A DNA stretch of 64,000 nt from Penicillus capitatus (GCA_965649825.1 OZ287694.1:2073292-2137291); one strand, 5' to 3'; numbered from the stretch's first letter, positions 25,781 through 61,262 are shown. The notes: generated from the letters alone by a model not told the origin. A program made the numbers and translations.

Positions 25781-27494
25781 ATGGAGTTCCAAGCAGTCGT
25801 GCTTTGCTGCGGCGATGCGCGGCGTCTGCATCCTTTGACGTCGGACGAGAGGTCGGAATGTATGCTGCACGTGGCGACACAGCCGTTGCTCTGGTATCCG
25901 CTCGCGGCCTTGAAGAAAGCCGCCGTCGAAAGCGTCATACTGGTCAGAAGACCTTCGCTGAGCAAACCCACCCCCACTGTCCGCTTTCAGGTCCTGCGAG
26001 AAGGTTCCGCCGTGTCTCACGTACGATCCTGGCTCGTCAAGGAGCACAACGCGCTGCCTTCGTGCGAGGTAACGCCTTCCTCCTGGGTCTAACGTGTTGA
26101 AGGTCGTCGAGAAGGTCGTGACGGTCGAAGCCGATGCCACAACGGCAGAGGCGCTGCGTCTCTGTCTGCCACGCATCTCTTGTTCGACGGTCCTGGTCAT
26201 GCGGCTAGGTGCGGTGACGGATCTCTCATTGAGGACTCTGCTCTCCGTTTACTCCATCGACGGCAATGCTGCCGCCATCGTCCTGATGAAGCGGAAGACG
26301 AGTGCTGCCTTCCAGACAAAGGCAGGGAAGACACCCAAGGTGCGGCGCTCTGTCCTGCAAACACCTCCTTGTGAGAGGCGCGCAAACAGGGGGTGGACTA
26401 TGTGGGTCTCGACGATGAGAAGAAGCGACTGCTCTTCTTCCATTCGAGTCGGGATGCTGCGAAGAGTCTAAAGATTCCTGGCAGCGTCTTGGAGAATCGT
26501 TCTCGAATCCATGTGACGACGGACTACAGTGATGTCGGGATCTACATTCTCTCAAAGTCCACCGTCCGCATCCCCGTGGACGTGATCGATCTGGCACGGC
26601 AGGGAGGCGCTGTCGTTGTTTGGAGAGAGGCCGTTATGGACTGGCATCTCCACTCACCTGCTGCCGCATCTCGTCAGGAGCTCTGTCTCTCCGGTACCAC
26701 CGATGGCAACGAATGGGACGGAGTCTCAGGTGACAGCTCCAGATAGGAACGGACTGCTGTGCATACTGACGGTAGGAGCTGAAGGAGGTCGGGGCACGTC
26801 AGAAGGCTGGCGTGTCCGTCTACTTTCCGACGACGAACGAGCTCCTCTCCGTTGTCCGCTGTCCAAAATCCTTTGCCGAGGTCACTAAAGAGGCGAGGCT
26901 GTCTTCTTTGCAAATCTGTTGTGTGACTTGGAAATGGCATAGTTGATTGGAGTGCGCCTGAGGACGTCGTTGTTGGGACTGCCGGATGCGAGACAGGAGA
27001 ACCTCGTGCTGTCGAATGTCACCCTCTGCAGCAAGGCCACTGCATGCCTTACCGCACAGATCGCCCCGGTCTTGACCTGTCTGCCGTGCTAGGTGTCTGG
27101 GGCGTGCCTGGTCTGCGAGGGAACGAAGGTCGGCGAGAACACGACTGTGAAGAGAAGCTTCGTCGGGCGGAACTGCAGGCGAGTTCAGAACTCGAGAGAT
27201 CGGACAGTGCGTTCTGATTGTGGCATTGTCGCTCCAGTGTTGGCTCTGGATGCAAGATCATCAACTCTGTGCTTATGGATGGCGTCGTCGTTGGAGAGCA
27301 GTGTCACATCCAGAGCTCAGTGGTGGGTTCGGGAGCATCCATCGGTCCTTCATCGCAGATAAAAGACTCTTCTGTACGTGCCTTTGTCTCCAGTGCTGCA
27401 TTCTGTCTCGATCGGCGTCGTCCTGTAGGTGGGTCCGGCCGTGGTCATTCCGCGGGATTCTGACTTGAACGAAAGCATCCTCCCGGAGCAGTAG
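25781..27494 (+). CDS. EIF2B3: Translation initiation factor eIF2B gamma subunit, intact copy; 9 introns, 3 of them GC-AG
   Basis: NTP-transferase-like N-terminus MEFQAVVLCCG...LHPLT...QPLLWYPL and a C-terminal left-handed beta-helix (KVGENTTVKRSFVGRNCSVGSGCKIINSVLMDGV). Ends at TAG 27492-27494. Confidence 0.92.
26893..26942 (+). other. GC-AG intron (50 nt) in eIF2B gamma
   Basis: GAG|GCGAGG...CATAG|TTG. The unspliced frame hits TGA. Splicing gives SFAEVTKELIG, matching the family pattern AFMDVNRDVIG. Confidence 0.75.
27042..27092 (+). other. GC-AG intron (51 nt) in eIF2B gamma
   Basis: ACT|GCATGC...GCTAG|GTG restores the gap-free LbH sequence VTLCSKATVSGACLV. Confidence 0.7.
27179..27237 (+). 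other. GC-AG intron (59 nt) in eIF2B gamma
   Basis: CAG|GCGAGT...TCCAG|T is the only nearby donor that restores the frame (RNCSVGSGC). Confidence 0.85.
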
Positions 27495-27926
27495 AGATCG
27501 ATCGAGGCCGAGTTAAGGGCGCCACAGTTGGCGAGGACTTTCAGCAAGGCAGCGAACAATCAGTTTAGTTTTGAGTGACGTCATTTGCAATTAGCGTCCA
27601 ACGACACTTCGGTTAGAGAACTCAGCCCGACTCCATCCACGTAAGTAGTCGGTTGCCCAAGACGCGTTCCCTTGCGTTAGGACCTGTCATTTGCAATGGC
27701 TTTAGTCACCTTTCCGTTCGGTTCTGTGCTCACCGGAGCGGCATACCAAGCGCAGAACACAACGCGTCTTGGCAGCTGTCACGAATGAACGATAAAAACA
27801 AAGCTATCGCCGCGTCACACAGAGTAAGAAAGCGATGTGCGGCATCGCCGCAGAAACGCAAGATCTCGACGATGCTCGAGACATAAAGGAATCAAAGAAG
27901 CAACATATGAAGGTGCTTTTGTTATG

Positions 27927-28263
27927 TGTGGGAAATGAAGTGTCTTTTCCGTCGTTCGAAGCCGTCGGAAGCGGTTCGGTGTTATAATAACCACCATGGC
28001 GCGCTGACCATCAGCTGCGACGGGTGTTAACCTCCGGGCCAACTTCCTCATAACAATAGAGAGGTGGTTTTCGAACGTGCCTTGAAGTTCACGACAGTTA
28101 GTGCTAAGGTTAGGAAACTCGTAACCATTGTGGGTATTTAAGACCGATATTCCCGTTGTAAATAATCTCGAGTTCCTGTGTTATCGTTCGAGCATTCATT
28201 CGCGCCGTCGTTCGTGCGTTTTCGACTCGGCACTTCTGCGATTCATTACACCGATTCCCAACA
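27927..28263 (+). repeat. 5' LTR
   Basis: tgtgggaaatg...ttcccaaca, a direct repeat of 32849-33185. Confidence 0.97.
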
Positions 28264-28265
28264 TC

Positions 28266-28282
28266 TGGTGGACCTCCGGGGC
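28266..28282 (+). other. Primer-binding site
   Basis: TGGTGGACCTCCGGGG lies 2 nt after the 5' LTR and is complementary to a tRNA ending ...GGUCCACCA. Confidence 0.75.
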
Positions 28283-28317
28283 AACTGTCGAGCATTTTCT
28301 ATCATCTCTGACAAGCC

Positions 28318-31300
28318 ATGCGCATCGAGTCGATCTCCTTTCCGCGTTACGATGGACGCACTGACCCTAGGAGATGGGTCAACAAGATGACTTTGCTCTT
28401 TCGTCTTCAGCAAGTGGATGACCAGCCAGGAACGCGAGCCGAAATTGCGGTCACGTTGCTTGACGGGCCGGCGGCTGACTGGGCCGAACTCCACCATGAC
28501 GCCGACGCTCATTTGAATATCGATTGGGCCGAGTGGAGTCAACTGGTGATTGACCGTTTTGTGCGCGACCAAGACCCTGACCGCGCCAAGGACCAGCTCC
28601 GACACATCTTTCAGAAGCGACGAGAGTCCTTGTTGGCGTACGCTGAACGTTTCGCCTTAATGTGTTCTAGAGCTCGACCTGCCATCGACCCAGACGATTA
28701 TTACAAGTACTGGCTGAGAGGCCTACAAAATGACCGCGCAGCAGAGTACTCGTTCACTCGACTTGCGGCAAGCAATAATGCGCCAACCTTTGAGTATGCC
28801 GTTCGCTATGCGAAGTACGCGACGGAGGCACGCAAGAATGTTCGAGGATACGAGGAGACCGACGAAGAAGAAGACGAACCTGAACATGAAAATCGTAACC
28901 ATCCGACGGTCCTCAGGGAGAACGGAGCTCGTCGCCTTGCGAAGACAGGGCGAAGAACCACAACCATCGTGGCTGAGGAACCGGCGGCGGATGACTCCGA
29001 AGACGAAGAACTCCGTCAACTCATCTCCGGACTGACAGGCCTGCTTGCGAAGAGGCAGGAAAAGCGACGCGCAAGACGCGCAGAAGGCAACGCGTCTCGC
29101 TTCGTTGAGTCTGTGTCCGAGGATGAAGACGAAGATGAGGCTGAAGCAACCGCCAGAATGGCGGATGAAGATGAGCAGCAACCCAGTAAGCGACGCCGAG
29201 GTGCGGCTGGAAAGAAAGCGCGGAAACCGCGTAAGAAGCCCGAGCTCGACCGTGAATGGGCAGATTACGCTGCTCAAGCATGGGCCATCCCGCTGCGTTT
29301 CCTGAAAGGGCGCAGCAAACGTGAAGTCTACTCCCAAGTGATACTGGCGCTGAGAGACGCGTTCGGGTTCACTCCAAAGCCTAAAAAGAAGAAGGGCGAA
29401 GATGAGCCTTCTGCTTCAGCACCACCGCAGCAGACTGACGTATATATGGAACCGGCAGCACAACAACCGCAAGGACCGCAGCCGTACCAAGCCACCCTCG
29501 CACAGAAACGAGGCGGCAGAGACTGGCTCGAGCGATGCAAGGTATTCGTCGCAGGGCAGTTTGTGCCCAGAGTGATTGTAGACCCTGGCTCTTCGAACTC
29601 CATAATGGATGCGGAGTTCGCCCGTCAGTTCCACATCAAGCACACTATGCCCAGCCGAGGAACGTTACTGCTTGCGGATGGTTCTGTCCAGAAGCCGCTA
29701 GGACGCACTGACGAAGTTCGCGTCGAAGTGGGCGGTGTTTGGATACAGCAAGCGTTCAGTGTCCTGCCGACGAAGAACTCATATGACATTCTTCTCGGTA
29801 CGGACTGGCTGCGCACCGTCCGCAGCCGAGCCGACTTCGAAGAAGGAACGTATACCTTCGGTGTGAAAAAGCGCATTACGGTCGTGCCGAAGTGGCGCAA
29901 GCTCTTCTTCGCGAAAAAGCAACCCGCAGCTGTTGAGGACGATACCTCCGATGCCAGCAGCGAATCCGATATGGCCGCTGCACTGGAGGAGTTGGTCGAG
30001 CAATTGCAAGCCCTTGCCAGCGACAGCGAGAGTGAGGACGAGGACGAATGCTTCCTTGCACTGAGTGACCAGGTGCTTGGCGAATTGCACGTCAACCCGA
30101 AATTGAAGCCTGAGGTGCTCTCGGGTGTCCGCTCTCTCGTTAGTGAATACGTAGACTGCTTCGCCCTAACCTTTCAAGACATGGTCAGGACGCCCTTAAT
30201 GCAATTCGAGATCGAGTTGCGTCAAGGGGAAGTCGCGAAGCGCTGTGGCCGGACCCGACGCCTGGCGCCAAAAGAGACTGAGTTCGTCAAGGCACAAATC
30301 GACGAGCTGCTTGGAGCCAAGCTAATCATTCCGTGGGAAGAAGCCGCGAAAAAATACGGCTGCCCAAAACGCAAGAATCGTTGGCTGTCGCCAATAACAA
30401 TCGCACCAAAGAAGGATGGTTCGTTTCGTTTCTGCTGTGCGTACCAAAGGCTGAACGACGCGACCATCCCAGATAAATTCGTTCTACCTCGAGCAGACGA
30501 CTTGCTCGATCGCGTGACGGGTCACGCGTGCTACTCCGCCCTCGATGGATTCAGTGGGTATTATTCCCTTGGGCTGCATCCCGGGTCCGTATTGAAGACG
30601 GCGTTTGCGACGAGCTTTGGCGTCTTCTGTTGGCTCGTCCTACCTTTCGGGGTAACGAATGGTCCCGCTGCCTACTCGCGTTTGGTCGAGCAGGTCTATG
30701 GCGGACTGGACCGAGTCGGCGTCTTCATTGACGACGTCTGCTGCGCACACCAAAGCGAAGCAGGTATCGTGGAAGACTTGCGACGTGTGTTCGCGCGTTG
30801 TCGCGACGGAGGGCTCCGCCTGAAACCGAAGAAGTGCTTTATTGGCTATCGAGAAGTCGATTTCCTTGGCCACCGGCTGTGCCCAGAAGGGATGAGAATG
30901 GATGAAGCCAAAGTCGAGAAGATCTCGAGGATGCCCTCGCCGACGGACAGAAAACAATTGCAATCTCTTTACGGCATGTTCTCTTATTATCGCCGATTCC
31001 TGAAGAACTTCGCGGGCGTAAGTGCGCCGATGTCGAGCCTCCTTTCGACACGACGAGACTTTTTGTGGACCCCCGAAGCCCAGAAGGCACTGGAGGAGTT
31101 GAAGAAGCTCCTTGTCGACGGAGCCGTGTTGACGGCAGTCAACGAAGACCTGCCCTTTCTCGTCGACACGGATGCCAGCGCTTACGGAATCGGGGCCGTC
31201 TTGTCACAAGAACAAGACGGCGAAGAGCGTCCGATCTACTTCTACTCTAGGCTCCTAAAAGATGCTGAGACACGATACTCCGCCACCGAGCGAGAAGGAT

Positions 31301-32742
31301 TGGCATTGGTCGCCGGACTCAAGAAATTCCGCGTCTATGTCTTAGGACGCAAAGTGGTCGCTCGAACCGACCATGCAGCACTGTCACACATGCTGCGCAA
31401 AACAGACCTGACGGGTCGTATTGCCCGTTGGAAGCTTATCTTGTCCGAGTACGACGTCCATTACGTGACGAGGCCCGGAGAAAGACACCGCAACGCTGAT
31501 GGACTGAGTCGCCTGGTCGATGAAGGCTCGGAACCTCGACCAGTCAATAAAGAAGAGGAATGCGATGAGTGTCCAGCGCTCGTGGCCGAGGACGTTGCTG
31601 CCGCTTTCCAAGCCTGCCGCGAATACGCGGAAATCCTCCCCTCGGTCAACGAACAGGACAGTCGATTTCGGTGGGGTGAGCGCAATCTTTTCTTTGAAGA
31701 CTTAGATGGACGGCGCAAGATCTGTCTGCTGCCGAACCAAGTCCGCGCGGTCGTCGGTGAAGAACACTGCGTCGGACACTTTTCTGCCGAAATAACATTA
31801 CAACGAGTAAGGCAAAGATATTGGTTTCCGAAGATGCGCAAGCAAGTGCAAGACCTCGTGAGGACCTGCCAAACCTGTCAGTTGTTCGGTTCCAAGCCCC
31901 CCATCCGTAGCACTATCCCCATTGCCATCGAACAACCATGGGAGCTGGTCGAGTTGGACACGGTCGTCGGCTTACCGACGACGCCGCGGAAGGCAGTAGG
32001 ATTTGTCACGGCGATCGACTGCTTCACAGGGTTCGTAATAACAGATGCATTGACGTCCTTGGGAGCTGCGAAGACCCTCAAGTTCTTTATCAATAAAGTC
32101 GTTTGCGCTTGGGGCGTGCCGCAGAGAATCCTGACGGACAACGGGACGGAGTTCCAAGGTGTTTTTAGTGAGACGGTGAAGAATCTCGGGATCGAGCACC
32201 GATGGTCGACGCCACGATACCCCCGCAGCCATGGCAAAGTCGAGAACGTACAGCGCCTCGTCCTTGACCGCCTGAGGAAGTGCCAGAATCCGAGAAGCTG
32301 GGACGAGAACCTCCCGGCTGCGACGTTTGCTGTGAACGCACGACGAGGCAAGTTCCTGTCGCCACTCGAACTTCTCACAGGGGTCGTGCCGAAAAGCCGC
32401 ACTGAAGTGAATCTGTTAGCCGGCGAGAGCAAAGGGGATGCAGAGCCCTTGCAGACCGCCCTTGCAGACCGTCTGACCGATCTTGCGCTTTGTCGCGAGC
32501 GTTTTCGTGACTCTGCGAAGAAGATCCGCGAGTCCTGGACTGCAGAAGCCGCGATCCCACGCATCGAGCCTGGGAAAGAGGTCCGCGTCTATCGACTTGA
32601 AGACCACGGGAAACTCGAAGCAGCGTTCGAGAAAGGTGTCGTGACGTGGTGGGGTAATCAAGGAGCTTGCAGAGTTCTGGTCGATGGTCGCATGAAGAGA
32701 ATGCCGCAGTTCTGCGTGAAGCCGTGGATCGCTCCCCAATAA
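28318..32742 (+). CDS. Gag-pol polyprotein, 1474 aa (gag, aspartic protease, RT, RNase H, integrase)
   Basis: Protease IVDPGSS, RT VFIDD, RNase H TDASAYGIGAVL...TDHAAL, integrase zinc finger H..H...CQTC and DDE (LDT, TDNGTEF, GKVE). The RT-RH-IN order is gypsy type. Confidence 0.97.
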   Translation: MRIESISFPRYDGRTDPRRWVNKMTLLFRLQQVDDQPGTRAEIAVTLLDGPAADWAELHHDADAHLNIDWAEWSQLVIDRFVRDQDPDRAKDQLRHIFQKRRESLLAYAERFALMCSRARPAIDPDDYYKYWLRGLQNDRAAEYSFTRLAASNNAPTFEYAVRYAKYATEARKNVRGYEETDEEEDEPEHENRNHPTVLRENGARRLAKTGRRTTTIVAEEPAADDSEDEELRQLISGLTGLLAKRQEKRRARRAEGNASRFVESVSEDEDEDEAEATARMADEDEQQPSKRRRGAAGKKARKPRKKPELDREWADYAAQAWAIPLRFLKGRSKREVYSQVILALRDAFGFTPKPKKKKGEDEPSASAPPQQTDVYMEPAAQQPQGPQPYQATLAQKRGGRDWLERCKVFVAGQFVPRVIVDPGSSNSIMDAEFARQFHIKHTMPSRGTLLLADGSVQKPLGRTDEVRVEVGGVWIQQAFSVLPTKNSYDILLGTDWLRTVRSRADFEEGTYTFGVKKRITVVPKWRKLFFAKKQPAAVEDDTSDASSESDMAAALEELVEQLQALASDSESEDEDECFLALSDQVLGELHVNPKLKPEVLSGVRSLVSEYVDCFALTFQDMVRTPLMQFEIELRQGEVAKRCGRTRRLAPKETEFVKAQIDELLGAKLIIPWEEAAKKYGCPKRKNRWLSPITIAPKKDGSFRFCCAYQRLNDATIPDKFVLPRADDLLDRVTGHACYSALDGFSGYYSLGLHPGSVLKTAFATSFGVFCWLVLPFGVTNGPAAYSRLVEQVYGGLDRVGVFIDDVCCAHQSEAGIVEDLRRVFARCRDGGLRLKPKKCFIGYREVDFLGHRLCPEGMRMDEAKVEKISRMPSPTDRKQLQSLYGMFSYYRRFLKNFAGVSAPMSSLLSTRRDFLWTPEAQKALEELKKLLVDGAVLTAVNEDLPFLVDTDASAYGIGAVLSQEQDGEERPIYFYSRLLKDAETRYSATEREGLALVAGLKKFRVYVLGRKVVARTDHAALSHMLRKTDLTGRIARWKLILSEYDVHYVTRPGERHRNADGLSRLVDEGSEPRPVNKEEECDECPALVAEDVAAAFQACREYAEILPSVNEQDSRFRWGERNLFFEDLDGRRKICLLPNQVRAVVGEEHCVGHFSAEITLQRVRQRYWFPKMRKQVQDLVRTCQTCQLFGSKPPIRSTIPIAIEQPWELVELDTVVGLPTTPRKAVGFVTAIDCFTGFVITDALTSLGAAKTLKFFINKVVCAWGVPQRILTDNGTEFQGVFSETVKNLGIEHRWSTPRYPRSHGKVENVQRLVLDRLRKCQNPRSWDENLPAATFAVNARRGKFLSPLELLTGVVPKSRTEVNLLAGESKGDAEPLQTALADRLTDLALCRERFRDSAKKIRESWTAEAAIPRIEPGKEVRVYRLEDHGKLEAAFEKGVVTWWGNQGACRVLVDGRMKRMPQFCVKPWIAPQ

Positions 32743-32831
32743 AAATTTCTTAACGCTCAATGGTTCTCCCTTTTACCTGAGTCGTGTGTTTTCGTTTACT
32801 CTGTCACTTAAACGTCGGGACGTGACGTGTT

Positions 32832-32848
32832 AAGTGAGGAGGAGTCAC
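32832..32848 (+). other. Polypurine tract
   Basis: aagtgaggaggag lies a few nt before the 3' LTR. Confidence 0.65.
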
Positions 32849-33185
32849 TGTGGGAAATGAAGTGTCTTTTCCGTCGTTCGAAGCCGTCGGAAGCGGTTCG
32901 GTGTTATAATAACCACCATGGCGCGCTGACCATCAGCTGCGACGGGTGTTAACCTCCGGGCCAACTTCCTCATAACAATAGAGAGGTGGTTTTCGAACGT
33001 GCCTTGAAGTTCACGACAGTTAGTGCTAAGGTTAGGAAACTCGTAACCATTGTGGGTATTTAAGACCGATATTCCCGTTGTAAATAATCTCGAGTTCCTG
33101 TGTTATCGTTCGAGCATTCATTCGCGCCGTCGTTCGTGCGTTTTCGACTCGGCACTTCTGCGATTCATTACACCGATTCCCAACA
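32849..33185 (+). repeat. 3' LTR
   Basis: Direct repeat of 27927-28263. Confidence 0.97.
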
Positions 33186-33731: not shown

Positions 33732-35811
33732 CTAGAGAGAGATGTGCGAGGTCGAGTCGCCGTCGGCGTTCATGTATCCCGCTTCGCTCGGCGTCATCGA
33801 ACGCGTCGTGACGGTGCCGCTGAGCCGAGAGTGACTCCTGTCGATGTCCCGAAGCTCTTGCTGAACCGCCGCCGCGTTCACCGTCTCGTTCGGCGCCGTC
33901 GGACGGATAACGATGACGCTGCCCGACGTCAACCCGATCTGCGCAACGGACACACTCAGGCATCCGTCCATCCGTCGACGTTCGCTCACTTTCCCGACCG
34001 TCTGCTGAAACACCAGGATCTGCGTGAGCTGCTTCGCCGTCTGCTTGACGAAGAAGGTACATGGCGTGTTCTCCAGTCTGTCGTCGAGGTCGCAGAGGTC
34101 GTTGTAACACAGCGCGTGAAGCCTGAGCCTCCCGCTGGCGAACACGCTCCCGACGTACTCCACCGTCCCCTCGACCGGATGCAGGAGCATGCCGAAGAGG
34201 AGGACAGATCCCGAGGGTGGTCGGACGGGCGACGACACCCTCTTCTCTTTGAAGTAGAAAGTCATCGTCAGGTTCTCCTCTTCGTCGCTGTGGTCGCTTA
34301 TCTCGCCGAGGCAGAGATCCATCTCCGCCAGGTCGTCGATGCAGACGGCGACGGAGAAGATCCCCTTTCCCTCCTCCGGGCAGAGCCACGTCGTCGACTG
34401 GAACGCGTGCGAACCGGCGTCTTCCTGAATCTGCAACGGACGTCGCTGTCTTGACGGCGTACACGGTCTCGGCGGGTTACCAGTTTCTTGACGGTCCTCA
34501 GGGACTCGCGCGCAGAGAGGATGTACATTCTGCTCTTCGGGATGTGGAACATCCTCGACAGGCCCTCTCTCTTGACGAACGCCGCGATCCGCCTGTCGGT
34601 TACGACGTCTATGGAGACCTTGGTCCCCTCGAACACCGGCATCCGATCGACGAACTCCGGCGGCGCACCGGCGATGGTGATGCACACGCTGAACGTCAGC
34701 CATCCGTCGTGAAGGAACCGATCTGGGTCGATCTCGACGCTCTGACCGAACTCGGAGATCGGAATCTTGATGCGGCATCCGCCGCCACGCACATCTGAGA
34801 CACAACAGCAGTCAGCCATCCGCCGCCGCCGCCACTGTCCTTACATTCTGTGACGCTTCCCGACGGAATGCTGTGGCTGAAGAGGATGACGCGGCAGTCG
34901 ACGGTACATGACCCCAGATCCGGAGGGAGATGCAGGAAGAACGCCTGGCAGCACGCCTGGCGTTCGACCATCCACAGACCCCTGACAGCGACGCCCGTCA
35001 CTGACCGCGCAGCAAGAGGCAACGCACCAGGTCTTGTCGGCGAAGGAGAACGTCTTCGTCCAGTACGCCACATGCTCGATGTACAGCTCAGGCTTCACCG
35101 CCCACTGCAGACGGCAGAACGCATCACGCGCAGGAGTTTGCCCTAACAGAGTGCCGTGCCTTGCAGCAGGCCGTGGGCCCGTCCGTGCAGATGGTGAAAT
35201 CCTCATCGTGCTGATCGCAGAACTGCATGTGGAAGGTGATGGTGACAGATCCGTCTTCGAGCACCCGCAATCGTTTGTTAGGAATCTTGCCGCCGTACTG
35301 CGTTCCCTGCTCGAGGTAAGACATCTCGCCTGCGCAACAGGTGTCCCGCCCGCACTCGAGAGATGTCACATCAGGAGAATGATGGAGACTTGGCGCGATC
35401 GAAGGATCGTTGATCCACCAGTAGCAACGGCGGACTGGCGGAAATATCTCATCGTGCTGACAGAAGTACGCCTCCAGGCAGCCGTGTGGTGCGATAGACA
35501 CGGAGGCCGTCCTGCAAACCGTAGGTCCAATGCAGACGGCGAGGGAACGTCGACGCACCAGGTGAGTCCGAGGAACGGGATCTCTTCCGTCTGCAGCGTC
35601 TTCTTCGGACAGCGCGCCAGTCCTCTAGGCACTTCGAGCTGTACACAGAGGTCGCCCTGCGTGCGGAACTGGATGTACGCACCAAGACAACGCCTTTCCG
35701 TTCGGCGCACTCCTCCACCTTGTACTCGTATTTCATACCGTGCCACAGTCCGCATCCTCGAGGCACCGTTTTTGGGATGCGCGGTTCACGGCATGGGTGT
35801 CTTTTGCTCAC
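33732..35811 (-). CDS. Protein with two MATH-like domains and a USP7-like ubiquitin-like C-terminal region, multi-exon; may have further upstream exons to ~36440
   Basis: Spliced MATH segments (EIPFLGLTW; KWAVKPE...YWTKTFSFADKTW...FLHDGWLTFSV). The C-terminal VLLFGMLLHPVEGTVEYVGS...LTSGSVIVI resembles USP7/UBP12 Ubl repeats. No USP Cys/His boxes were seen. Confidence 0.6.
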
Positions 35812-36781
35812 CCGATGTCTTACGCATGCCCTTCGCTGCGAACGCTGGAGTCTTGGACAAAACTGTTGGCAAAAGCGCGTCCCTTGTTTAGCGATTTGGA
35901 TGCGGCGAAACGGAAAACGGACTTCACAGCGCGGACTGTACGGACGATGCTGCAGACGACGTCATCTGGATTCGGTCGTAGCATCGAAGGACATGCGGGT
36001 GCCCGAGTTCGACAAGGCGTGTCTTCTCCACGGAAGGCAGGTCTTGCGAACGCCGGGTCAAGGAGACGACGTGCGAAACGACGCAACACACTGGAGTCGC
36101 TCTCTGCCCACCTGCATCTAACGACAAGCGTCGACCAGGCAACAGCACGCTTTGCTGGACGTCGTCAGAGCGACGGGCTGTCGTTCTGCCTCGGCGCCTG
36201 CCATCCATTTTCGGCGCTTCCTTGCGCCGGTATCGTCGACTGCCTCATCGAATGATGCTCTCAGGAGCTGTGGTCTTTGTCGGTGCGTGGACGCGATGCC
36301 GTGCGTGGCTGGTGCACAGAGAACACCCGAAAGAGGTAAAAGCGAACTGATCGTACCTTCTGCGTCAGCGTGGCAACGTCGCGAGACCTTGTTGTCGGAC
36401 AGGACGGACGTCACATCAGTTTTGATCGCATCCCGGCTGACGATTGCCACCTTTAAGATTGCTGAATGGCCACGATACGGAGAAAACGCATCTAAAAGAT
36501 ATCTAAGATACTATTTCTTGCGCATTTTTACGCTTCTTGGATCGCGCAACGGAGCTAAGCTTGACCTAATCGGTCATCAGATCTTCGATGCTGACCCTAA
36601 AGAAAGAATCTTTCTTACACACTGAACAACGAAGTTTCTCTGGTTAGCAGACCGACTGCATCTTCAAAGATTTGTTCACTTCTTCAAACACTACCGTTAA
36701 GGTTTGCAGCAAACAATGTCGCCAGAAAGAATGAGAAACGGCAAAAAGATGTGACGCGTCTGTCTTCGTTCAATCTTTCGA

Positions 36782-38999
36782 TCATTCTGTCTGTGGTAGA
36801 AGTTCCTTGTTGCGTCGAGCATTCGCGGTGGCGACTCCCTGAAAGATCGAGTTCACCAGAGCTTCGTCCGGGCGTTCGTTTTTGCGGCCGCCGCGCCACA
36901 CTGGAGCGTCCACCGATACAGGTTCCGGATAGGGAGGCAATCCCACTCTTGGTCGGTCCTCGTCTGCCACACACACCCGCCCGTCAGAGAAAGGCGGGGG
37001 ATCCAGGAATCGATACCATTGCTGAGGGTGAGGAATTGTCGGAGATAGTGGGCGTCGGTCATGGATTTGTTCTTGGCGTCAATCCCGGGCGAACGACGCA
37101 CTTCGAACGTCTTGGACACGGCTTCGGGTCTCTGAAGGCACTGCAAGATCACCTCAGCCAACTCGACAAATCGCAAACGGCCAGCAGTCGTGTCCCCTAT
37201 ACGCCACCGACCTCACATCCCTCCCTAGCTGTCATTATCTCGGCGTACCCTGGGAGAACTGCAGCAGGTCTGGCGTCAGATCTCCTGTCTCCAGTTCTTC
37301 GCTGATGAACCCTGGTCGTGAAGAAGGCACTCGAGGCAGCACATAGCAAGCAGAGAGTGTTGACTGACCATTGGGACAGACGATGGTGTAGGGCAGAGTG
37401 GAGCAGCGCACGGTGCTGTTGCCTTCGAACTTGTGGTTCAGGACACCTCCAGGATTCAGGCGCATGATCGGCACTGTCTCTTCATTGCGTCGATCTATGT
37501 TCTCACCGATGCGCGCACTGCGCTCTTGGCCAGCCGACGACAAGTGCACCAACTGCAACAGCAGAACCGTCCCCTCGGAGATAAATGTCTGGTGTGACAA
37601 CGACAGGCACCTGTGGCCGCGCAGCTCTGTATGTCGAAACGGAGGCAACTGAGAAGGAGAAGTCCCCGGCGGGGCTCTTTCTGTTCGGAAAACCGTCGAC
37701 CGTTTTCGTACTGCTCATCTGAGAAAGACAGATATGGCGAGATCGTCATCTTGTAGAGAAGGTACCCACCCATCCGAGTCTGGCAGTGGGGGAGGGGGCA
37801 AGGGTGGCAGTCTGGTCCGGAATGCCTTGCTTCACAAGACGGAAGTGATGCAGCGGTAGTTTGACTTCCGTCCATTGCCCGTCCACCTAGACAGCAAGCA
37901 TCATCCATAGATGAGATGACAGCGACGTCTGAGAGGAGGGACCGTGTCGAAGGAAGCTGCAAAGAAACTCTGTTCATGCGATCCTGTTTCGTCCTGCACG
38001 GGGAGACATATTCAATGACTGAGACAGGGAAGAGTGAGCGATGTGACTGACGTTTTGCAGTGTGATGAAGTGTGAGCGTCCGTCGCCTCTGACAGAAAAG
38101 GTTAGCCCGTCTGCTCCTGTGAGATCCAGTGCGCAGCTGTCTGCCCACTGAATCGTCCCTTTCGGCGTCAGGTCTCTCACTCTTTCCTACATGGCGCATC
38201 GTCGCCGCACGCTCGCATGATCGATGTCTCACTCCTTGCTCGAGAGTCCCCTCCATGCGAATCCCGTTTGCGTCCGGCGTGATGCGACTCGTCGATGCAC
38301 CGATCGACGCGTCCGTCCAGGACATGTCCGGCACGAGATCGACCGAATTCAGAATCGTCATGTCAGCCACCGGCGTCAGATGACGTTCCGCTGCAGCGAC
38401 GACGTTCATGACGCCGACGGAGTCAACGGAATAGGCAAAGACTGTCGCTGGGTCGTACGGATCGGTCACTGTGTCCGGGTTTGTGTTTCTCCATGCCGGA
38501 CCCGAGCAGAGGACCACCTGTTGGACGCCCGAAAACAACGCAGCTGTCAACGTCTCAGGCTTCATCATGTCCACGCCGTCCACCACACGCAATCCCTCGC
38601 CACCGAATCCCATCCCCTCCAGTTTCGCGGCCGAGCGGACGGCGGCGACCACTGGGCGCCCCGTTTCCAAAAGCTGCACACCACGATCTTAGCCGCTCAT
38701 CCCACGACGCCGGCTGGACGGACCTGTTGTAGCACGGCGCGGCCGATGCGTCCCGTCGCGCCGAAGAGTAAAACGGCGCCGCTGTCGGACGCTACCGTCG
38801 ACGCGGCAGCGACGACAATGTTTCGGTCGCGACGCGGTTCGTCGCACAGCGTCACCCTCCAGTCCTTCACGCCACATCCACGCCGCGCTCTGCCTTTCCA
38901 AACCGTCCCGGCGGTCGTCTGTCGTGTGGCATTCCTCGGCAGCGCCACACCGCAGCGAACAACGGGCGTCACGGCCCACCTCGTCACACGCGTCGCCAT
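36782..38999 (-). CDS. NAD(P)-binding Rossmann protein with an inserted CIA30-like domain, plastid-type transit peptide, multi-exon
   Basis: VLLFGATGRIGRAV, AAVRSAAK and VVLCSGP; CIA30-like LDLTGADGLTFSVRGDG and WTEVKLPL; C-terminal SQGDTTAGRL...PEAVSKTFEV. Confidence 0.8.
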
Positions 39000-39335
39000 G
39001 CTCTAACGTTGACGTTGCTGCTCAGAATGTTGTGTCAACGTATGTAGCCGTATACGTAAAGCGTACGTGAAGGTGAGGTCATCAAGCGAAGGGCGGTGTT
39101 ACGTGCTCGTCACGTCGTGTCGCGGTATCTTATCACTTGTCCTCGTCAGCTTTACGTTTTTGTCGAATCCACCGCTGTTCACATCTGGCAAGTAGTATTT
39201 AGAACAACCCTGACGCCAGGAATATCGCTTCACTATTCTGAACGTTTCCATCGAGAACTTTTCCCGAACGTCGAACGGACGGTGCCAAGACCGGAGACCT
39301 CATCTTTGAGAGAACTGAAGACCCTACCCCAGACG

Positions 39336-45287: not shown

Positions 45288-45314
45288 CGGATCGGGGGAG
45301 GACGCGAACACTGT

Positions 45315-47881: not shown

Positions 47882-49907
47882 ATGGTACGTCCGAGCGAAG
47901 GCATCAGCGTTGACGATGCCTTCCAGCAATACATCGGCGAGTTCGGACGCGAACAGAAACGACTCTATTTCATTGTGAGCCAAAGGGCCCCAGTGCAGAG
48001 GACTCCGTGACTGTGTGTGCCTGTCTGTTCTCAGTTCAACCAAGTTATGGTTTTGACGATGATGCAAATATATGCCATGACGTTTGCCGAGTTAAACCCC
48101 CTGGACCACGACAGCTGGACATGTGTCGACCCCGTCAGGGACCGGAACTGCATGAAGCTCATGAGATCGAAGGACCAGATGAAGCTCGAAGAATTCACGC
48201 ACGAGTTCTGTCAGCTGAAACGGGATGCCTGGAACTGGACACGGCCGTGAGAAATCTTTAAAGCGTGAGACGGACGGCGGCTGAAAGAGTGACATGTGTG
48301 CCTAGAGAGATGAGCATCGTATCGGAGTTCGATCTGCAGTGCAGCAAGTGGAAGGTGAGCATCGTCGACGGGATGTTCTTCGCGGGGATCCTCGTCGGCG
48401 CCTCGCTCTTCGGATACCTGTCGGACAGAATGGGTCGGTCCCCAGTCGCCGTCTCGCGCACGCTCTCACTCTTCCCCTCAGGTCGGCGAACGATCATGTA
48501 CACGACGGTGGCGCTCAGCGGCTTTGCCTGTATTTCCACCTCCGTCGCCACGTCCTACTGGTGGTATTTGATTTTCAGAACAGTCATCGGTCACCCTCCC
48601 GTCGCATCTCTGTCTGCGGTCGCGCACTCGAGCGTTCAGGTGTCGGGTCCGGCGGCGCGGCGTTGACGTCCTTCGTCATCGCCTCTGAGTTTTTGGGACC
48701 GTCGAAGCGCGGCCGGCTGCTCATCGCTCTGCAGATCTTCGCATCACGTTCGTCCTTCCGCGTCGGCGCGGTCTCCCGAGGCGCTCTGCTGTGCAGTGGG
48801 TTCGTGTCTGCTGGCCGCCCTGGGGTATCTGCTGCCGTACTGGCGAATGATTTTCCTCGTGATCGGGACGCTGACGCTGGTGTACATCGTCACCTGGGAC
48901 CTCACGATGGAATCGCCCCGATGGCTGCTCATCAAGGGACGCAAAGGTGCGCTCCGGCGTCCGATGGCGTGATCGGCTGTCATTCGACCTGCCGCAGGGG
49001 AGGCGACGGCCGTCCTGGCCGCACTTGCATCCGGGAACAACACGAAGCTCCCAGAGAAACCGCTGCACGACATGATCACCATTCCGTCCGTCGGCAACAC
49101 GTTCGCGCAGATTCTGAGGCATCCCGTCCTGAGAGGCTGGCTCCTCATCACCCTGCTGTCCTGGTTGGCGCCCCTCCGCGTCTGTTTATCTCTCGACGCG
49201 ACGGATGCAGGTCTGCGGTGTCGCTGGTCTACTACGGCCTGTCGATGGCGATTCAATTCATTCCCGGATCTCTCTACACGAAATTCCTGTACACGATTGC
49301 GATCGAGTTTCCGGCCATCATCTTCTACATGCTCATGGTGGACCGAGTCGGAAGGAAGCCGCTCTTCGCCTGGGGCTTCGTTCTGGGTGGGTTTCTGGAC
49401 GATCCGGAGAACGCGAGACCTGACGGCGGCTGTGGATGTGCAGGTGGTTTCGCCTGTTCGCTGATCGCCGTCGCACCCGACTGGCTGAGTCTCGTCCTGG
49501 TCGTCGTCTGCCGATTCGCCATCTCGGGCGTCTACGCTGTCGCCTTTCTCTACTCTTCCGAGATCTTCCCGACGGTACTCCGGAGAGGACTGCCCTGCGA
49601 TCCTCCCCTGTTCTGCGTGCAGGTGGTGCGGAACGTCACGATCGGTTACGCGAGCAGCGCGGCCCGCGTGGGCGGCATACTGTCGTCGTTCGTCCCCGTC
49701 ATGGCCCGCTCCTTCGGGTCCTACTTCTCGTTCCTGGTGCTGGGAGGCGTCTGCATCTGCACGGGAGCGGCCTGCGCCTTCCTGCCGGAGACCCTGGGGA
49801 TGGCCACGCCGGAGACGGTCGAGGACATGGACCAGATGGTGACGCGACAGGCACGCGCTCTCAACAGCCGCTACGAGCAGGTGGCCGCGGACGAGTCCAG
49901 AGTGTGA
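47882..49907 (+). CDS. MFS organic cation/carnitine transporter-like protein (SLC22/OCT family), ~9 introns
   Basis: DDAFQQYIGEFG, SIVSEFDLQC, FGYLSDRMGRR, MESPRWLL, VDRVGRK, YSSEIFPTVVRN and FLPETLG. Confidence 0.9.
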
Positions 49908-49995
49908 CCGATGGCGATCTTAACCGTTACAGCAGTTGGCAAACAGACAGCGTGATACGTGTACTTTAATAATCCACACAGAGCTGATCGTACAC

Positions 49996-51230
49996 TCAAG
50001 ATGGAGCGGTGGGCGGCGGACCGGGAGGCGGCCTGGGCACCGGCATCGCCGCTGCCCTCGCCCTCGCTCCGCCCCCCGATGCCGTCTTGCGCTTTTTGCT
50101 CTCGGACGTGACAGCGACCTCCGATCCGCGTTTCAGGGGCAGGCAGCTTCCCATGGCAGAGGGATCCATGGAGGGATACGGCGTCTCGGACGTCGCCTCC
50201 GGAGCGGAAGCGGCGTCGACGACGGAACGCTGCGGGGCATTGGGCCTGCTCCACATCAGCTTGCAGGGGACGCCCTTGACGGAGAGCTTCATCGACAGGG
50301 CCTCGGCCGCCCGTTCGGCGTCCGATCTGGCGACGTACTTGACGAATCCGCACCTCTTGTCCCCGATAACCCTGATGGACTCGATCTCGCCGTAGGCGTA
50401 GAAGCGGTCCCTCAGGTCCTCCTCTCCGGCGTCGTCCGGCAGTCCGCCCACGTAGAGCGTCGTGACGGAGGGATCCTCCGGAGGCGTCAGCTTCGGCAGC
50501 TGCTCCATCTTCTCCAGCAGCTTCGCCGCGACGGGATCGTTCACGCCGTAGTACCGATCCTTGATGTTCTGCTCCGTCAGCTCCGCGTCGGTCGGAAGCT
50601 CGTGGCGGTAAGGGCACTCCGTCCCCCGGTTGCACTCGCCCCGGATGAAGAACGTGCACACCGGTGCCAGGTTGCGCCGGTAGAACGGCGCCATGCGCTG
50701 CATCTTGGTCAGCGTCTCGTTCCTGGGCATCTGCTTGTACTGCTGGCCCAGCTCTCCGGTCTGCTTGTGCATTTCCAGCATGTACTCCTTGTTGACGTCG
50801 CTGTTGGGAACGTCCTCGACCTCCAGCCCCGATGCCTTGTCGCGCACTTGGACCGGCAGACCGTAGTCCAGATCCAACAGACACACCTGACAGACGTTCT
50901 TCGCCTTGGCCACCTCCTGACAGACGATCGTCTTCTTGTAGCTGAAAGACACAGGTGTGGGTGGTGGTGTGCCTCGGACGGCCGTGCATTACCGGGCGTC
51001 GCTGCCGGGGCGCCAGCGGAAGACGGTGTAGGGTCGGCCCGAGATGTGGCACGTCCCGCCGTACTCTATCTACACAGCGTCCGTCGGTCGGTCCGGAGAG
51101 GGAGAGACGGTGGACGGGCCCGTTGCATTCGGACGTATGGATTGGGACCGAGACATGTTTCGCAGACGATGGGGAAGTCGGAACGCTCCCAGCCGTCCTC
51201 GTCCGGGTCGTAGAGGAGACGATGCGCCAT
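49996..51230 (-). CDS. RBM22: Pre-mRNA splicing factor RBM22/Slt11 (zinc fingers and RRM), 2 introns (the first is GC-AG)
   Basis: [57 protein letters not shown], a CCCH finger and [11 protein letters not shown]. Confidence 0.96.
51070..51119 (-). other. GC-AG intron (50 nt) in RBM22
   Basis: CGG|GCCCGT...TGTAG|ATA restores [18 protein letters not shown]. The nearby GT is out of phase. Confidence 0.88.
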
Positions 51231-51299
51231 GACGACAACGCCTTCGCAGCAAGAGCACGTAATGAATGGAATTGATGATGACGCACGCGGTCTTCGTTC
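51231..51299. promoter_or_regulatory. Very short divergent intergenic region between RBM22 and LTO1
   Basis: 69 bp separate the divergent ATGs. Confidence 0.4.
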
Positions 51300-52543
51300 A
51301 TGAGGTGCACGATGTCGTCGGCGTCTGCTCGGACGCGAGGGATGTCTCCCGGCGCCGTCTCCCGGCGCCGAACGCCGACGCCCGTCTCGAGGCGTCTCCG
51401 GCGCCACTGCGCGACGACGGATGACGTGGCCTCGTCGCACCCCTTCCTCTTCGAAGCGCTCTGTGTCGAAGGCGGTGCTGCAGAAGACGTGCAAGGCGCT
51501 GATGGGACTGGCGGCTGCGGGCGCAGCGGAGACGCTCTACCTCACTGCGGTCGTCTTCGCGACATCTGCGTGCTCTCTCTGACGGGTTCCCGTTCCGCAG
51601 TCGAGGTTTCTCCACGTGCCGCTGGCGTGTCTCGACGCCGGATGCGATCTCGTGGCGAACAGCGCCTACTCCGAGGTCTACGGCGTCCCCCTTTCGCTTC
51701 TGGGTGCGAAGCCCCGGCTCGTCACGGCGACGTCGACGGTGTCGTGCGGATTAGGGTTCTTCGGATACGGCGCGGTGGGTCTCTGCGCGTGGGACTGTCT
51801 CGGCCAGGATGCGACGGCCGCCTCCAAGGCAATGCTGCTGAGCGGCGCGGCCGTCATGGCATCGTCTTCCGCGGTGCTGGTGTACACGCTGCTGACGAAG
51901 CTGGACGGCGCTGTCTGTTCGTGGTGCTATCTCTCGGCCGCGCTCTCCTTCGCGATGTTCGGACTGGCGTCGACGATTCCGCGGCGAGAGGAGCTTACGA
52001 CGGCCTGGGTGCCGAGCTCGGCTCTGGCCGGCGTCGTTGCCGTGTCTCTGCTGACGGTTTTCAACACAGTCGACGACGCAGCCGTCGCCAGAGACATCGT
52101 CATTGACTACAGCGTATGGTCCACGGGCGGCGTCGACGCGATGGGGCGTGTGTTTGTGCAGGACCCGGTGGTGACAGCCGAGGCCAGTGGCGAGACGATC
52201 GCCCTGGCCAAGAGACTGAGAGAGGCGGGCGTGCGGATGTTTGGCGCGTTTTGGTGCGATCACTGCTACGACCAGAAGCAGAGCTTCGGCAAAGGGGCGA
52301 TGGAGTTCTTTCCCTACGTCGAATGCTATCCAGACGGCTACCGAAAGGTGAGAAGCTTTGTTGGCGGGCTGGAGAGGGGTCGACTTGTGCGTGGTCCAGG
52401 GCGTGAAACGCGCATCGGCGTGCGAAGACGCCGACGTCAAGGGATATCCGACGTGGATGTTCGGTCGGAAACAGATCGCGGGAGAACAGTCTATCGAGTT
52501 CCTGGAACAAGAATTGAATGACCTGCAGAATCAAAAAGAATGA
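51300..52543 (+). CDS. LTO1: Thylakoid thiol-disulfide oxidoreductase LTO1 (VKOR plus thioredoxin-like domain), multi-exon
   Basis: ETLYLT...C...[29 protein letters not shown], Trx [18 protein letters not shown]...YVEC and GYPTW. Confidence 0.92.
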
Positions 52544-52680
52544 TGTGTGTAATCGCCGAGACGGGAAGGCACGATCCGTCAGAAAGTTGCTTGAACGACT
52601 GGAAGGTTTCCTTCAACGAGACTGACGCGACGTTTGTCCAGACCGACAACAATGTATCGCGACGATGCGACGCAGACGCA

Positions 52681-58200: not shown

Positions 58201-59390
58201 TTTCTTTTGGCTGATCTAGAGTCCATTAAGAGACGAGGAGCCTTTCAACGATTGCTAAGGACAAGATGAAACAGAATGTAAAGGATATTGATAACTCGCT
58301 CTGTGGATGTGGCGGAGCAGTACTAAATGGAGAGACAAATTTCAAACAGTATCACAGCCAGCGTCTTTATCAATGAGTTAGAGAGGCTTAAGGAAGTAGT
58401 GGTCAAGAGATGCGTAAAATGCTGCGCAAAGACAAGTATTTGTCATTCCTGCCCAGACAGAAACGGCAGAGTCTGCAGATCTGCGAACTGAAGATAACAA
58501 ACAGTAAGGCAGCATCCTGGTGCAGTCTGTATAATGCCAGCGTCATCTACGATTTCTGGTCCAGCCTCAACTCAGAAGCGCTAAGGCAGGAGAAGACAGA
58601 AGTCTCAATCCTTTTGATGCACGAAGGAGGACAGGTAGTCAGTTGCTGGATGGTTCGGCGGTCGGGGACACAACTTCGTGTCAGCTTCTCGAGGCAGAAG
58701 AGGCGTCTATCTGCTCACCTCCAGTCCGCGTTGCTTGCAGTCCGACCACCGCTGGTTCTCGGCCATTCGGCCCTGGCAACGTCATCTCCTTCAATGCACA
58801 TCCACATGAGGGAAGGAATCGATAAGTTTGACGCCGATGGGTTCAGATGCCTGTGTCCCCAGCTTCAAACACAACCTCCCCGTCCTGCACTTTACATATC
58901 GCCCTTAAGTAAGTCTGTCTTGCAATACCTTTAAGCATCGTTGTGGCGGCAGACGGATGGTGGTGTCTGTGGTGGCCGGCATCGTGACGGGATTGCTTTG
59001 GATCACGGGGTTGAAGGAATTCATGATGTAAGTTGTTGTTTCTTGGACTGGTGCTTGACGGAATACCGCCATCTGTGTAACAAACGTGTGACGGGTATGC
59101 TGGGTTTCGTGTTCGGAAGTACCATTGTGCATGGAAAGTGCCGCTGAAATCGACATGATAGGAGCTCGATTCGAATGCAGCTGCATCACGTCGCGTTTCG
59201 TCTGGACGAGTTCCCTGGAGAGAATGCGAACGGAGTTTGTATCTCCACGCTTCGCCGCTTCGGCACCGACTGTTCGGTTTTTTCTGCTGACGCTTGAGTC
59301 CAGAATACGTCTTCATGCGTCGTCGCGATGAAGCGCCGCGTTCATTTTCGCCCGAGATGCGACTCATTTGATCCGTAGCTGCAATCATCG

Positions 59391-61262
59391 ATGGACGTCG
59401 CGCGCAAAGTGGCAGAGGTTTTCTCGGCGATGGAAGCCGCGACGAAGGTGGCGATCTTTGCGCAGCCTGACGGAGCGGACTCGATCGCCGCCTACGGAAT
59501 CCTGAAGGTGCGCATCGCTCGCTGTGCGTGCGGCAATGAAATGGGACGTCGTAGATGCTGCTGTTCTACTGCTGCCGCGACGTGGAAGCGTACACGGACT
59601 GCACTTCGGCCGAGATCGTCCACCACCGTCTCACGGCCGCGGAAGACAAGGCAGCTTCGCTCTGGTTTCAGAGACGATGTGTGAGATGGTGTGGTCAGGA
59701 GATTGGGATGCTGTTTCTGGTGAACTGCTACCACGAGACGGTGAAGGAAGCTGTGAGGCAGCTGCCTCGACTCTCTGAGGCCGCGATCGTCGTTCTCGAC
59801 AGCCGGTGGCGCGAAGGAGGCAGACGGAGGGTGGAGACGCTCCGTTGCTCTTCCTCGGCGGCACCGGTGCGATCCCGATCAGCTCTGTGTCGCGACGAGG
59901 CGACGGGAGTACAGAGGAGGACGTCCTGCGTCGAGTCCACGAGCGCAGCCAGCGACTGGAGCTGCCGTGCTACAGGTACCAAGGCACGCCTGCCGCGCTC
60001 TGCGCCTACCACCTATGCATCTCCATGATGCCGAGCTTCCGGCATCCCAGTGTTCTCTGGTCTCCACCTGAACTCGAAGTCGTATGGTGCGACGAAGTGT
60101 GAGATGCAGGAGAGCGATGGTGGGCTGCGCGGACCTCTACCAGCAGAAACGGATACACCGGGACCAGTACATCCACCTCCACGAGTACCTGATGCAGGAG
60201 GTGTGACCGGTCACTCTTCTACTCTTTCCTCCCTCGCCTGTGACTGCAGGTGGAGTCCAGCACCGAGCAGATGGGCATCGAGTAGCACTCTCTTGTGATC
60301 TCGCCTGTGTGAGTCGGGTGATGCGGTGCAGGGAATCCCACGAGACCTGCCTGCACTTCTTCCAGCAGTCGAATCTGTGGGACGCCCTGCACATGAGTCC
60401 GCATCTCTATGAGAAGTTCGACGCCTCGGGATTCGAAGACTTCATCGCCAACGCGCTAGGATTCCCGCAGCACATAGCCGAGTACGCCTACTGTCCGATC
60501 TCACTATACGCTGGGTAGCTGCCCTGAAACTGTGCCCTGCAGACCAGTTTGTGACCGGACCTGGAAGAGAGATCTGGAGCGAGCTGCAGACGGCCGGCAA
60601 CCTCGTCGGCGTGCAGGACCTCGTGCTGCCCGGCTTCCAGAAGACGTTTCAGGACGGATACCTCGTCCACGCGATGGACCACGCCCTGGCCGTCAACCGT
60701 GAGTCAGCGCAGCAATAGCGCGACCTGAACGAGAGCGAGGTGCAATGCAGTGGCGCTGTGGCATCTGAGGGCGAAGCAGCACTGGCAGGAGACGATCTGC
60801 ATCCACGACATCTTCTGGTCCGTCGGGCATCGCGTCCTGAATTCGAGCCTTGCAGAGAATGAGGGTTGTCTGGATGTGTGAGGGGCGGGGAGGAAGCCAT
60901 AGGGAAGCCGCAGGACATGATCCCGCGCTACGTCGAGATCCTCAAATCGGACTGCGATTCCAGACGCCAAAAGTGTGACCCACGACGTCACGCATCTTTA
61001 CCTGATATGTTCTCTGCCGGTTCGAGGACGCGGAGGAAGGAGTCTCTGGAGTGAGAACATCCCTTCTGCCTCACTGGACACTCCCGCATCGGCAGTGCTG
61101 AATGTTTGCTTGCTGAAGACAGTAGCTTCGTTTAGTCAAAAGCAGATATTCTCCAAAGCATGTCGCCCGCGTACTTACTTGGTTGGCAGCGTCTCTCCGT
61201 CCGACGAGCGCATCTTTTGCCATGCAGGATTCGTTGCGCTGCAGAGACAGTTCAGGGCATGA
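59391..61262 (+). CDS. CDC45: Divergent CDC45-like replication factor, multi-exon; 3' end uncertain
   Basis: VAIFAQPDGADSIAAYGILK, MLFLVNC, IVVLDS, GTPAALCAYHL...LWRAMVGCADLYQQKRI, SNLWDALHMS and DLVLPGFQK...HAMD follow the CDC45 motif order. Confidence 0.7.

Follow-up and report, generated by a model that had tools for sequence, protein, structure and literature searches.

Introns that begin with GC instead of GT (GC-AG introns) are unusually frequent in a 64,000-nucleotide (nt) stretch of DNA from Penicillus capitatus (GCA_965649825.1, OZ287694.1:2073292-2137291), which was analysed over its whole length and is referred to below as the window. In the genes that could be modelled in full, 6 of 40 introns (15%; Wilson confidence interval 7-29%) were of this kind, as were 8 of the 43 introns placed altogether, against a plant average of 1.2%; the excess claimed in a preliminary description of this DNA is thus real within the window. 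Comparison with homologous proteins and related genomes establishes the intron positions with their predicted borders, the excess over ~1%, the lack of a compensating donor context, the degeneracy of the GT donors, and one GT/GC difference from a sister genome. The explanation considered likely is that these are U2-type introns whose donor site has become relaxed in a minimal-intron genome, where changes from GT to GC persist, probably with some help from GC bias.

The window matches a section of the 1.84-Mb contig ctg340529_34x in the ENA metagenome assembly ERZ25074695 at 100% identity, and its proteins are chlorophyte by homology. Its nitrate reductase is 54% identical to those of Ostreobium and Volvox and 61% to that of Caulerpa, while the FtsH4-like protein reaches 71% to Bryopsis, RBM22 76% to Caulerpa lentillifera, and eIF2B-gamma 38% to Ostreobium. 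The closest neighbour of the window in a tree of RBM22 is a metagenome protein, and Caulerpa joins next (100/100 support); judged by these proteins, the source is a siphonous green alga of the Bryopsidales, sister to Caulerpa in that tree. Walking through public contigs yielded two comparators: the first (ctg338854, 85 kb, 22x), from the same sample, is colinear with window 6195-54231 at 93-99% identity and represents a second haplotype or strain; the other (ERZ26696514 ctg303793, hereafter L006), from another sample, has 82% nucleotide identity to window 40049-52554 and represents a sister species. The GC content of the window varies from 47% to 65% (mean ~54%), and the genes with GC introns lie in stretches of 55-65%.

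Borders of the GC-AG introns

The nine segments claimed in the preliminary description are listed here together with the three genes that hold six of them (a slash marks the predicted exon-intron border, and a caret below marks an intron position within a protein).

25783-27494, plus strand: eIF2B-gamma gene, nine introns (six GT-AG, three GC-AG)
26893-26942, plus strand: GC-AG intron in eIF2B-gamma, gag/GCGAGG...CATAG, 50 nt, phase 0; picked with four of eight homologs, including the two closest
27042-27092, plus strand: GC-AG intron in eIF2B-gamma, act/GCATGC...GCTAG, 51 nt, phase 0, ending in an in-frame TAG
27179-27237, plus strand: GC-AG intron in eIF2B-gamma, cag/GCGAGT...TCCAG, 59 nt, phase 2; picked with seven of eight homologs
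44884-44933, plus strand: GC-AG intron in the gene of a plastid-type ribosomal protein S20, aag/GCATTC...TTTCAG, 50 nt
45285-47760, minus strand: FtsH4-like gene, nine introns (seven GT-AG, two GC-AG), with six homologs aligned
46104-46163, minus strand: GC-AG intron in FtsH, aag/GCATCC...ATGTAG, 60 nt, phase 0; picked with six of six homologs
47497-47543, minus strand: GC-AG intron in FtsH, cag/GCATCG...CCCTAG, 47 nt, phase 0
49999-51230, minus strand: coding region of RBM22, a pre-mRNA splicing factor; first two introns modelled (one GC-AG, one GT-AG)
51070-51119, minus strand: GC-AG intron in RBM22, cgg/GCCCGT...GTGTAG, 50 nt, phase 0; picked with eight of eight homologs
35105-35159, minus strand: probable GC-AG intron in the "MATH" gene, aag/GCACGG...CTGCAG, 55 nt
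59651-59698, plus strand: candidate GC-AG intron in "CDC45", aag/GCAGCT...GGTCAG, 48 nt, in frame and stop-free

All nine segments begin with GC and end with AG on the strand given and measure 47-60 nt. In-phase GT alternatives lie within ~30 nt of most of these sites, and the borders therefore needed testing. A purpose-written protein-to-genome spliced aligner was run against sets of homologs, with and without GC donors, and in a decoy control GT was joined as a permitted donor by one of the remaining 15 dinucleotides at a time. GC brought the largest gain in eIF2B-gamma (59.5, runner-up 38.7), FtsH (40.8, runner-up 33.2), and RBM22 (7.8, runner-up 1.7), the runners-up being the same junctions moved by one codon, and it was the only one of the 16 dinucleotides to give consistent best-fit introns in these three genes; nitrate reductase, included as a control gene, yielded no consistent non-GT intron. 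The four genes for which homolog sets were used could be modelled in full from their homologs with AG acceptors alone. For the final comparative placement, the frames of conserved blocks were fixed by cross-species amino-acid identity, and the borders between blocks were then enumerated. A comparative intron caller that had asked for conserved GT/GC..AG ends in both species together with open frames was discarded as too permissive, with thousands of candidates, because GC-rich sequence is open in many frames.

For eIF2B-gamma, spliced alignments to the closest homolog (P0361; 53% identity over residues 1-412 of 417) and to the Ostreobium protein (P0362) gave nine introns. Allowing GC donors raised the score with P0361 from 1001 to 1117 and selected exactly the three claimed introns. 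The Ostreobium gene also has nine introns, of which the seven with alignable flanks match the window in codon and phase, including all three GC sites; the other two fall in poorly conserved stretches. The intron at 26893-26942 is identical in the second haplotype, and its Ostreobium counterpart (...MNKE^LASP) has the same phase and is itself GC-AG (gag/GCAAGT), although this border is the least tightly pinned of the trio because the flanking protein is poorly conserved. The intron at 27042-27092 was picked with seven of eight homologs, and with six of six in the decoy test, and corresponds to ...NKAT^IASS in Ostreobium, with the donor GTGAGG. At 27179-27237, the acceptor is forced, because the open stretch of the downstream frame contains a single AG, and the required phase has no GT, while the counterpart in Ostreobium (...KKCR^IGNN, phase 2) uses GTCAGT.

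A partial second copy of eIF2B-gamma was also seen in the window at ~6223-7166 and ~7170-7420. It shows 82% nucleotide identity to 25734-26675 and includes a further segment corresponding to 27304-27561; the region of the three GC introns is missing from it, and it is probably a truncated paralog or a pseudogene.

Intron positions in the FtsH4-like gene are mostly shared with Bryopsis FtsH, and the cross-species frames agree. At the intron that begins at 46163, GC was the best of the 16 donor dinucleotides, and the Bryopsis gene is interrupted at the corresponding position (...DVDLK^ITARGTPG) by an intron whose GT donor starts GTGCAG. L006 reads aag/GTATCC from the same base, with indels of 1 and 4 nt inside the intron. 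The border at 47543 is ambiguous by protein homology alone. In L006, however, the donor is cag/GCACCG, with four indels inside the intron (2, 1, 3, and 4 nt), and the nearest GT alternative (47527) lies 17 nt past the exon end, compared with 16 in the window, so that it is out of phase in L006; the Bryopsis intron at ...HQQ^VEFLKDLN (GT) matches the position ...QQQ^AEHLRDLN in the window. A 554-amino-acid open frame from a long-ORF (open reading frame) search for FtsH was rejected, being mostly GC-rich non-coding sequence with only 17-18% matched.

In RBM22, the GC border yields ...VRMQR^IEYGG, the same sequence as in the proteins of Caulerpa, Bryopsis, and Ostreobium-like algae, and the first intron of Bryopsis RBM22 lies at VRMQR^IEFGG in phase 0, with GT. 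An equal-length GT alternative (51115-51066, a 4-nt shift) was rejected, as it gives RAQY and replaces the invariant IE; an Arabidopsis RBM22 sequence, RANY, had favoured GT at 51115, a preference that was overturned by the chlorophyte homologs and the Bryopsis intron position. The donor GCCCGT is kept in L006. The first 63 residues of RBM22 are 100% identical to those of Caulerpa, leaving no lineage-specific change there in a core spliceosome protein.

The S20 intron has the donor aag/GCATTT at the same position in L006, where the intron is densely substituted and carries a deletion of 6 nt, and two of the three changes from L006 in the 21 nt upstream of the donor are synonymous. The Pfam score of the protein is 76.7 bits with the GC model, compared with 68.6 with the GT alternative at 44863. 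In the transit-peptide region of the same gene (44683-44762, plus strand), a likely intron with cag/GTGCGC aligns to cat/GAGCAC in L006, where either the donor would be GA or the border differs.

The "MATH" donor is retained in the second haplotype, which differs by one single-nucleotide polymorphism (SNP) within the intron. Its paralog (window 571-624, minus strand) does have a GT intron at the homologous CC[K/V]^W.V.P position, as had been described; its donor is gtg/GTACAC, and the GTACGT that had been named as the donor lies further inside. The flanking exon fragments gave no Pfam match, and the gene name, like "CDC45", is a provisional one taken from the preliminary description. For "CDC45", read-through is possible, several GC or GT boundaries fit equally, and the site lies outside both the second haplotype and L006; the N-terminal fragment, with or without the candidate segment, matched nothing in Pfam or PDB.

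Independent support for the exact border is therefore available at eight of the nine sites, the "CDC45" candidate being the exception. For six of the GC-site introns, Ostreobium or Bryopsis has an orthologous intron that agrees in codon and phase (five GT, one GC). The second haplotype keeps GC at all eight sites that it covers; SNPs that separate the two haplotype contigs are denser in the curated introns (2.4%) than in the flanking exons (0.8%; p = 1e-7), with the donors all conserved. In L006, GC stands at three of the four comparable donors and GT at the fourth, and indels that are not multiples of three are confined to introns.

Frequency and donor context

The census comprised 40 introns in fully modelled genes together with single introns in S20, "MATH", and the "MATH" paralog. 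GT was chosen wherever GT and GC both fitted (for example at 48941/48947 and 41605/41611).

eIF2B-gamma: 6 GT, 3 GC
FtsH: 7 GT, 2 GC
RBM22: 1 GT, 1 GC
Nitrate reductase: 4 GT, 0 GC
Transporter-like gene, 48.3-49.9 kb (48300-49880): 7 GT, 0 GC
Cyclin-like gene: 3 GT, 0 GC
Gene G3, 42.1-43.0 kb, minus strand: 1 GT, 0 GC
Gene G4, 43.2-43.8 kb, plus strand: 3 GT, 0 GC
VKOR: 2 GT, 0 GC
Single introns in S20, "MATH", and the "MATH" paralog: 1 GT, 2 GC

This result is consistent with the earlier count of 7-9 in about 55 introns, and the binomial probability of at least 6 GC introns in 40 is 8e-6 at a rate of 1.2% and 5e-3 at 4%.

None of the eight supported GC donors listed above has the compensated GCAAG form, and their mean number of consensus matches (3.75 of 7) is close to that of the GT donors (3.31 of 7), in keeping with the initial observation that these donors lack a near-perfect match to U1. 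The GT donors are themselves degenerate: position +3 is G in 13, C in 11, A in 5, and T in 2 (for example GTCACC, GTCCCC, and GTCTGG), the 11 of 31 with C at +3 being unusual for eukaryotes, and position +5 is G in 21 of 31. Between orthologous introns of the window and L006, positions +3 to +6 vary freely, while G at +1 and a pyrimidine at +2 are kept. Both the degenerate GT donors and this free turnover fit the relaxed 5' splice-site constraint proposed at the outset. Ostreobium differs here, as the three GC donors seen in two of its genes are all GCAAG[GT].

Intron length is strikingly uniform, at 46-60 nt in 42 of the 43 curated introns, which span 571-52441 (median 50), compared with 140-820 nt in the orthologous introns of Ostreobium and Bryopsis, and such uniformity fits recognition across the whole intron. 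A scan of the window against Rfam at the gathering threshold found no small nuclear RNA (snRNA) and no other RNA family.

As a separate observation, the 3' end is TAG in five of eight GC introns (26940-26942, 27090-27092, 46104-46106, 47497-47499, and 51070-51072) and in 6 of 35 GT introns (Fisher p = 0.017). This may reflect chance in a small sample, or weak donors may be linked to the choice of acceptor.

Proposed relaxation of the donor and competing explanations

According to the explanation preferred here, introns would have shrunk to ~50 nt, and the 5' splice site would retain little information apart from the G at +1, the pyrimidine at +2, and a tendency towards G at +5 and towards AG ahead of the border. 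A T-to-C change at +2 would then cost little, because so little pairing with U1/U6 is under selection, and could persist or drift. GC-biased mutation or gene conversion in a gene space of 55-65% GC would probably help, and the whole short intron, through its length, branch site, and 3' site, probably carries recognition. We infer that such introns are recognised as units, that GC bias directs the change, and that the rate may hold genome-wide. The GC state appears mostly derived in this lineage, because five of the six orthologous introns are GT in the relatives; donor turnover seems to be ongoing, because one site differs between the sister genomes, and GC appears stably tolerated, because three sites are common to both.

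Several observations weigh against this explanation. All 20 introns in the genes not named in the preliminary description are GT, as against 6 GC introns among the 20 in eIF2B-gamma, FtsH, and RBM22, which suggests clustering in a small number of genes. The pattern among lineages is patchy in tiny samples: 0 of 17 introns are GC-AG in two genes of Bryopsis (RBM22 and FtsH), and 3 of 13 annotated introns, with strong consensus, in two genes of Ostreobium (eIF2B-gamma, L007; nitrate reductase, L010:10001-13839). A branch-site-like motif, searched for with a simple pattern, was found in only four of the eight GC introns. Moreover, GC pressure alone is a weaker explanation here, because the window has ~54% GC, compared with 65% in the genome of Emiliania huxleyi, in which GC-AG introns abound. 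Finally, the databases searched turned up only prokaryote-style ORF calls for the window contig and no spliced gene models or transcripts.

A bolder version of the relaxed-donor explanation can be entertained only tentatively. Under it, the donor would be reduced to "G-pyrimidine", introns of ~50 nt would be defined as wholes by their measured length, and U1/U6 pairing would possibly be changed, C being common at +3. If true, this would represent a natural donor choice nearly independent of the U1 consensus in a green alga, distinct from the explanation by a GC-rich genome put forward for haptophytes and pelagophytes.

It is unlikely that the excess is a local fluke, in which the introns would be real but the genome-wide share only ~2-4%, the window being rich by chance. 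Such a fluke would accord with the uneven split between named and unnamed genes and with the selection of the window for its GC introns. However, even a 4% rate leaves the small probability given above for the observed count, the census leaned to GT at ambiguous sites, and the GC introns are spread over five or six unrelated genes within 25 kb; furthermore, the sister genome keeps three of four GC donors, and two Ostreobium genes show 3 of 13. A raised share may be wider in the Bryopsidales than has been recognised.

Equally improbable is a specific change in the splicing machinery (the U1 snRNA 5' end, the U6 ACAGAGA box, U5 loop 1, U1C, Prp8, or Prp28) that makes C at +2 equivalent to U. Altered pairing rules are hinted at by the unusual frequency of C at +3 (a third of GT donors), and the GA donors of Eurytemora and Oikopleura have prompted the proposal of a variant U1 isoform, but ~85% of donors in the window are still GT, and the N-terminus of RBM22, a part of the catalytic core, is unchanged from Caulerpa over the 63 residues compared.

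That the borders are misplaced, with nearby GT donors or other acceptors used and slightly different proteins made, is very unlikely. The GT alternatives close to most sites and the indecisive homology at FtsH 47543 leave some room for this, yet the proteins that would result lose or gain 4-8 conserved residues or have the invariant IE replaced, the positions of orthologous introns in Ostreobium and Bryopsis coincide exactly with the GC sites, and in L006 the GT at 47527 falls out of phase. Still less credible is an origin as minor-spliceosome (U12-type) introns: four of eight start with GCAT, and GCATCC at FtsH 46163 (GTATCC in L006) resembles a U12 5' site, but by inspection none of the eight combines an RTATCCTY donor with a branch site that resembles TCCTTAAC and lies 10-15 nt from the 3' end, the closest (46163) lacking the branch motif, and six orthologs carry U2-type donors (GTGAGG, GTCAGT, GTGAGA, GTGCAG, GTGCTC, and GCAAGT). 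Sequencing or assembly error at the +2 base, which the metagenomic source alone brings to mind, can be virtually dismissed, as the same GC recurs at all eight covered sites in the second contig (22x, compared with 34x coverage) and at three of four in the genome from an independent sample.

Known systems, annotation, and other features of the window

The initial statement that GC-AG introns amount to ~1% in most eukaryotes agrees with the plant average, while the case is less unprecedented than it had implied. In the haptophyte E. huxleyi, GC-AG accounts for 56% of 241 curated junctions, with a GC/GT ratio of about 60/40 and some junctions verified by reverse-transcription PCR. Among pelagophytes, predicted shares are about 14-17% in Aureococcus anophagefferens and about 14% in Pelagomonas calceolata, compared with 0.32% in their lower-GC relative Aureoumbra. 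High GC content, a factor not raised in the preliminary description, has been proposed as the cause in both groups, and the GC content of splice sites correlates with that of the genome across kingdoms. The top-ranked literature on Bryopsidales, Caulerpa, Ostreobium, Bryopsis, and Ulva does not mention GC-AG introns. Accordingly, no green-algal report of frequent uncompensated GC-AG introns was found, the phenomenon itself being known from a few GC-rich microalgae.

The present alga resembles E. huxleyi in the apparently routine use of GC donors by the normal spliceosome with an unchanged AG acceptor. However, that alga belongs to another supergroup and reaches 56-60%, whereas the window shows ~15% at ~54% GC, with introns uniformly ~50 nt long. 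The share in the window nearly equals those predicted for Aureococcus and Pelagomonas, and the contrast with Aureoumbra parallels that between Bryopsis (0 of 17) and the present alga. In these pelagophytes, which are stramenopiles, there are 0.1-0.9 introns per gene of 103-177 nt, whereas the genes here are intron-rich (nine introns each in eIF2B-gamma and FtsH) and the introns tiny. With the GC-AG introns of plants and animals, those of the window share the dinucleotides, the major spliceosome, and the interchange of GC and GT at orthologous sites, but they are roughly tenfold commoner and lack the compensating AG/GCAAGT context. The closest parallel in gene structure is Ostreobium quekettii, in which eIF2B-gamma intron positions and phases match where alignable (7 of 9) and the ...KE^L... 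intron is GC-AG in both, although its GC donors are compensated (GCAAG[GT]) and its introns measure 150-820 nt. A relaxed second donor base is also seen in Eurytemora affinis, Oikopleura dioica, and dinoflagellates, the variant U1 isoform having been proposed for the two animals; these organisms also use GA or GG, whereas only GC stood out in the decoy test here.

These introns also bear on annotation. Genes of E. huxleyi have been mis-annotated by predictors built on GT-AG, and similar mis-annotation by standard predictors here, as had been suggested, is plausible. At least one GC intron is present in five of roughly a dozen modelled genes; software that assumes GT-AG borders, or that accepts GC only within a strong consensus, would fragment or distort roughly every third or fourth gene here. 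Because of this distortion, genomes of siphonous algae recovered from metagenomes would need GC-aware annotation guided by proteins or transcripts. In addition, tiny uniform introns with a degenerate donor, together with a sister genome, a second haplotype, and relatives with larger introns (Caulerpa, Bryopsis, and Ostreobium), constitute a natural series that could show how much 5' splice-site information the spliceosome needs and whether GT-to-GC turnover is neutral.

Besides RBM22, the window holds a second splicing-factor gene, encoding a KH-domain BBP/KHDC4-like protein (39096-40535, plus strand). An intact Ty3/gypsy long terminal repeat (LTR) retrotransposon lies at 27927-33185, ~430 nt downstream of eIF2B-gamma, with a 1474-amino-acid gag-pol ORF (28318-32742), identical 338-bp LTRs, and the 5-bp target duplication TTATG; its insertion appears recent and polymorphic, because the second haplotype contig has the empty site. 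In L006, a 2.6-kb block (36672-39263) is inverted and adjoins the opposite side of the syntenic segment at 40-52.5 kb. Synteny with L006 also breaks at 52554, adjoining repeats that are shared by window ~7850-8930 and the LTRs. A very large, apparently intron-free gene for a NACHT/NB-ARC ATPase with a long HEAT-repeat array occupies 8084-12827 (plus strand), and the array includes tandem units of ~111 nt (11491-12531) whose number differs between the two haplotype contigs.

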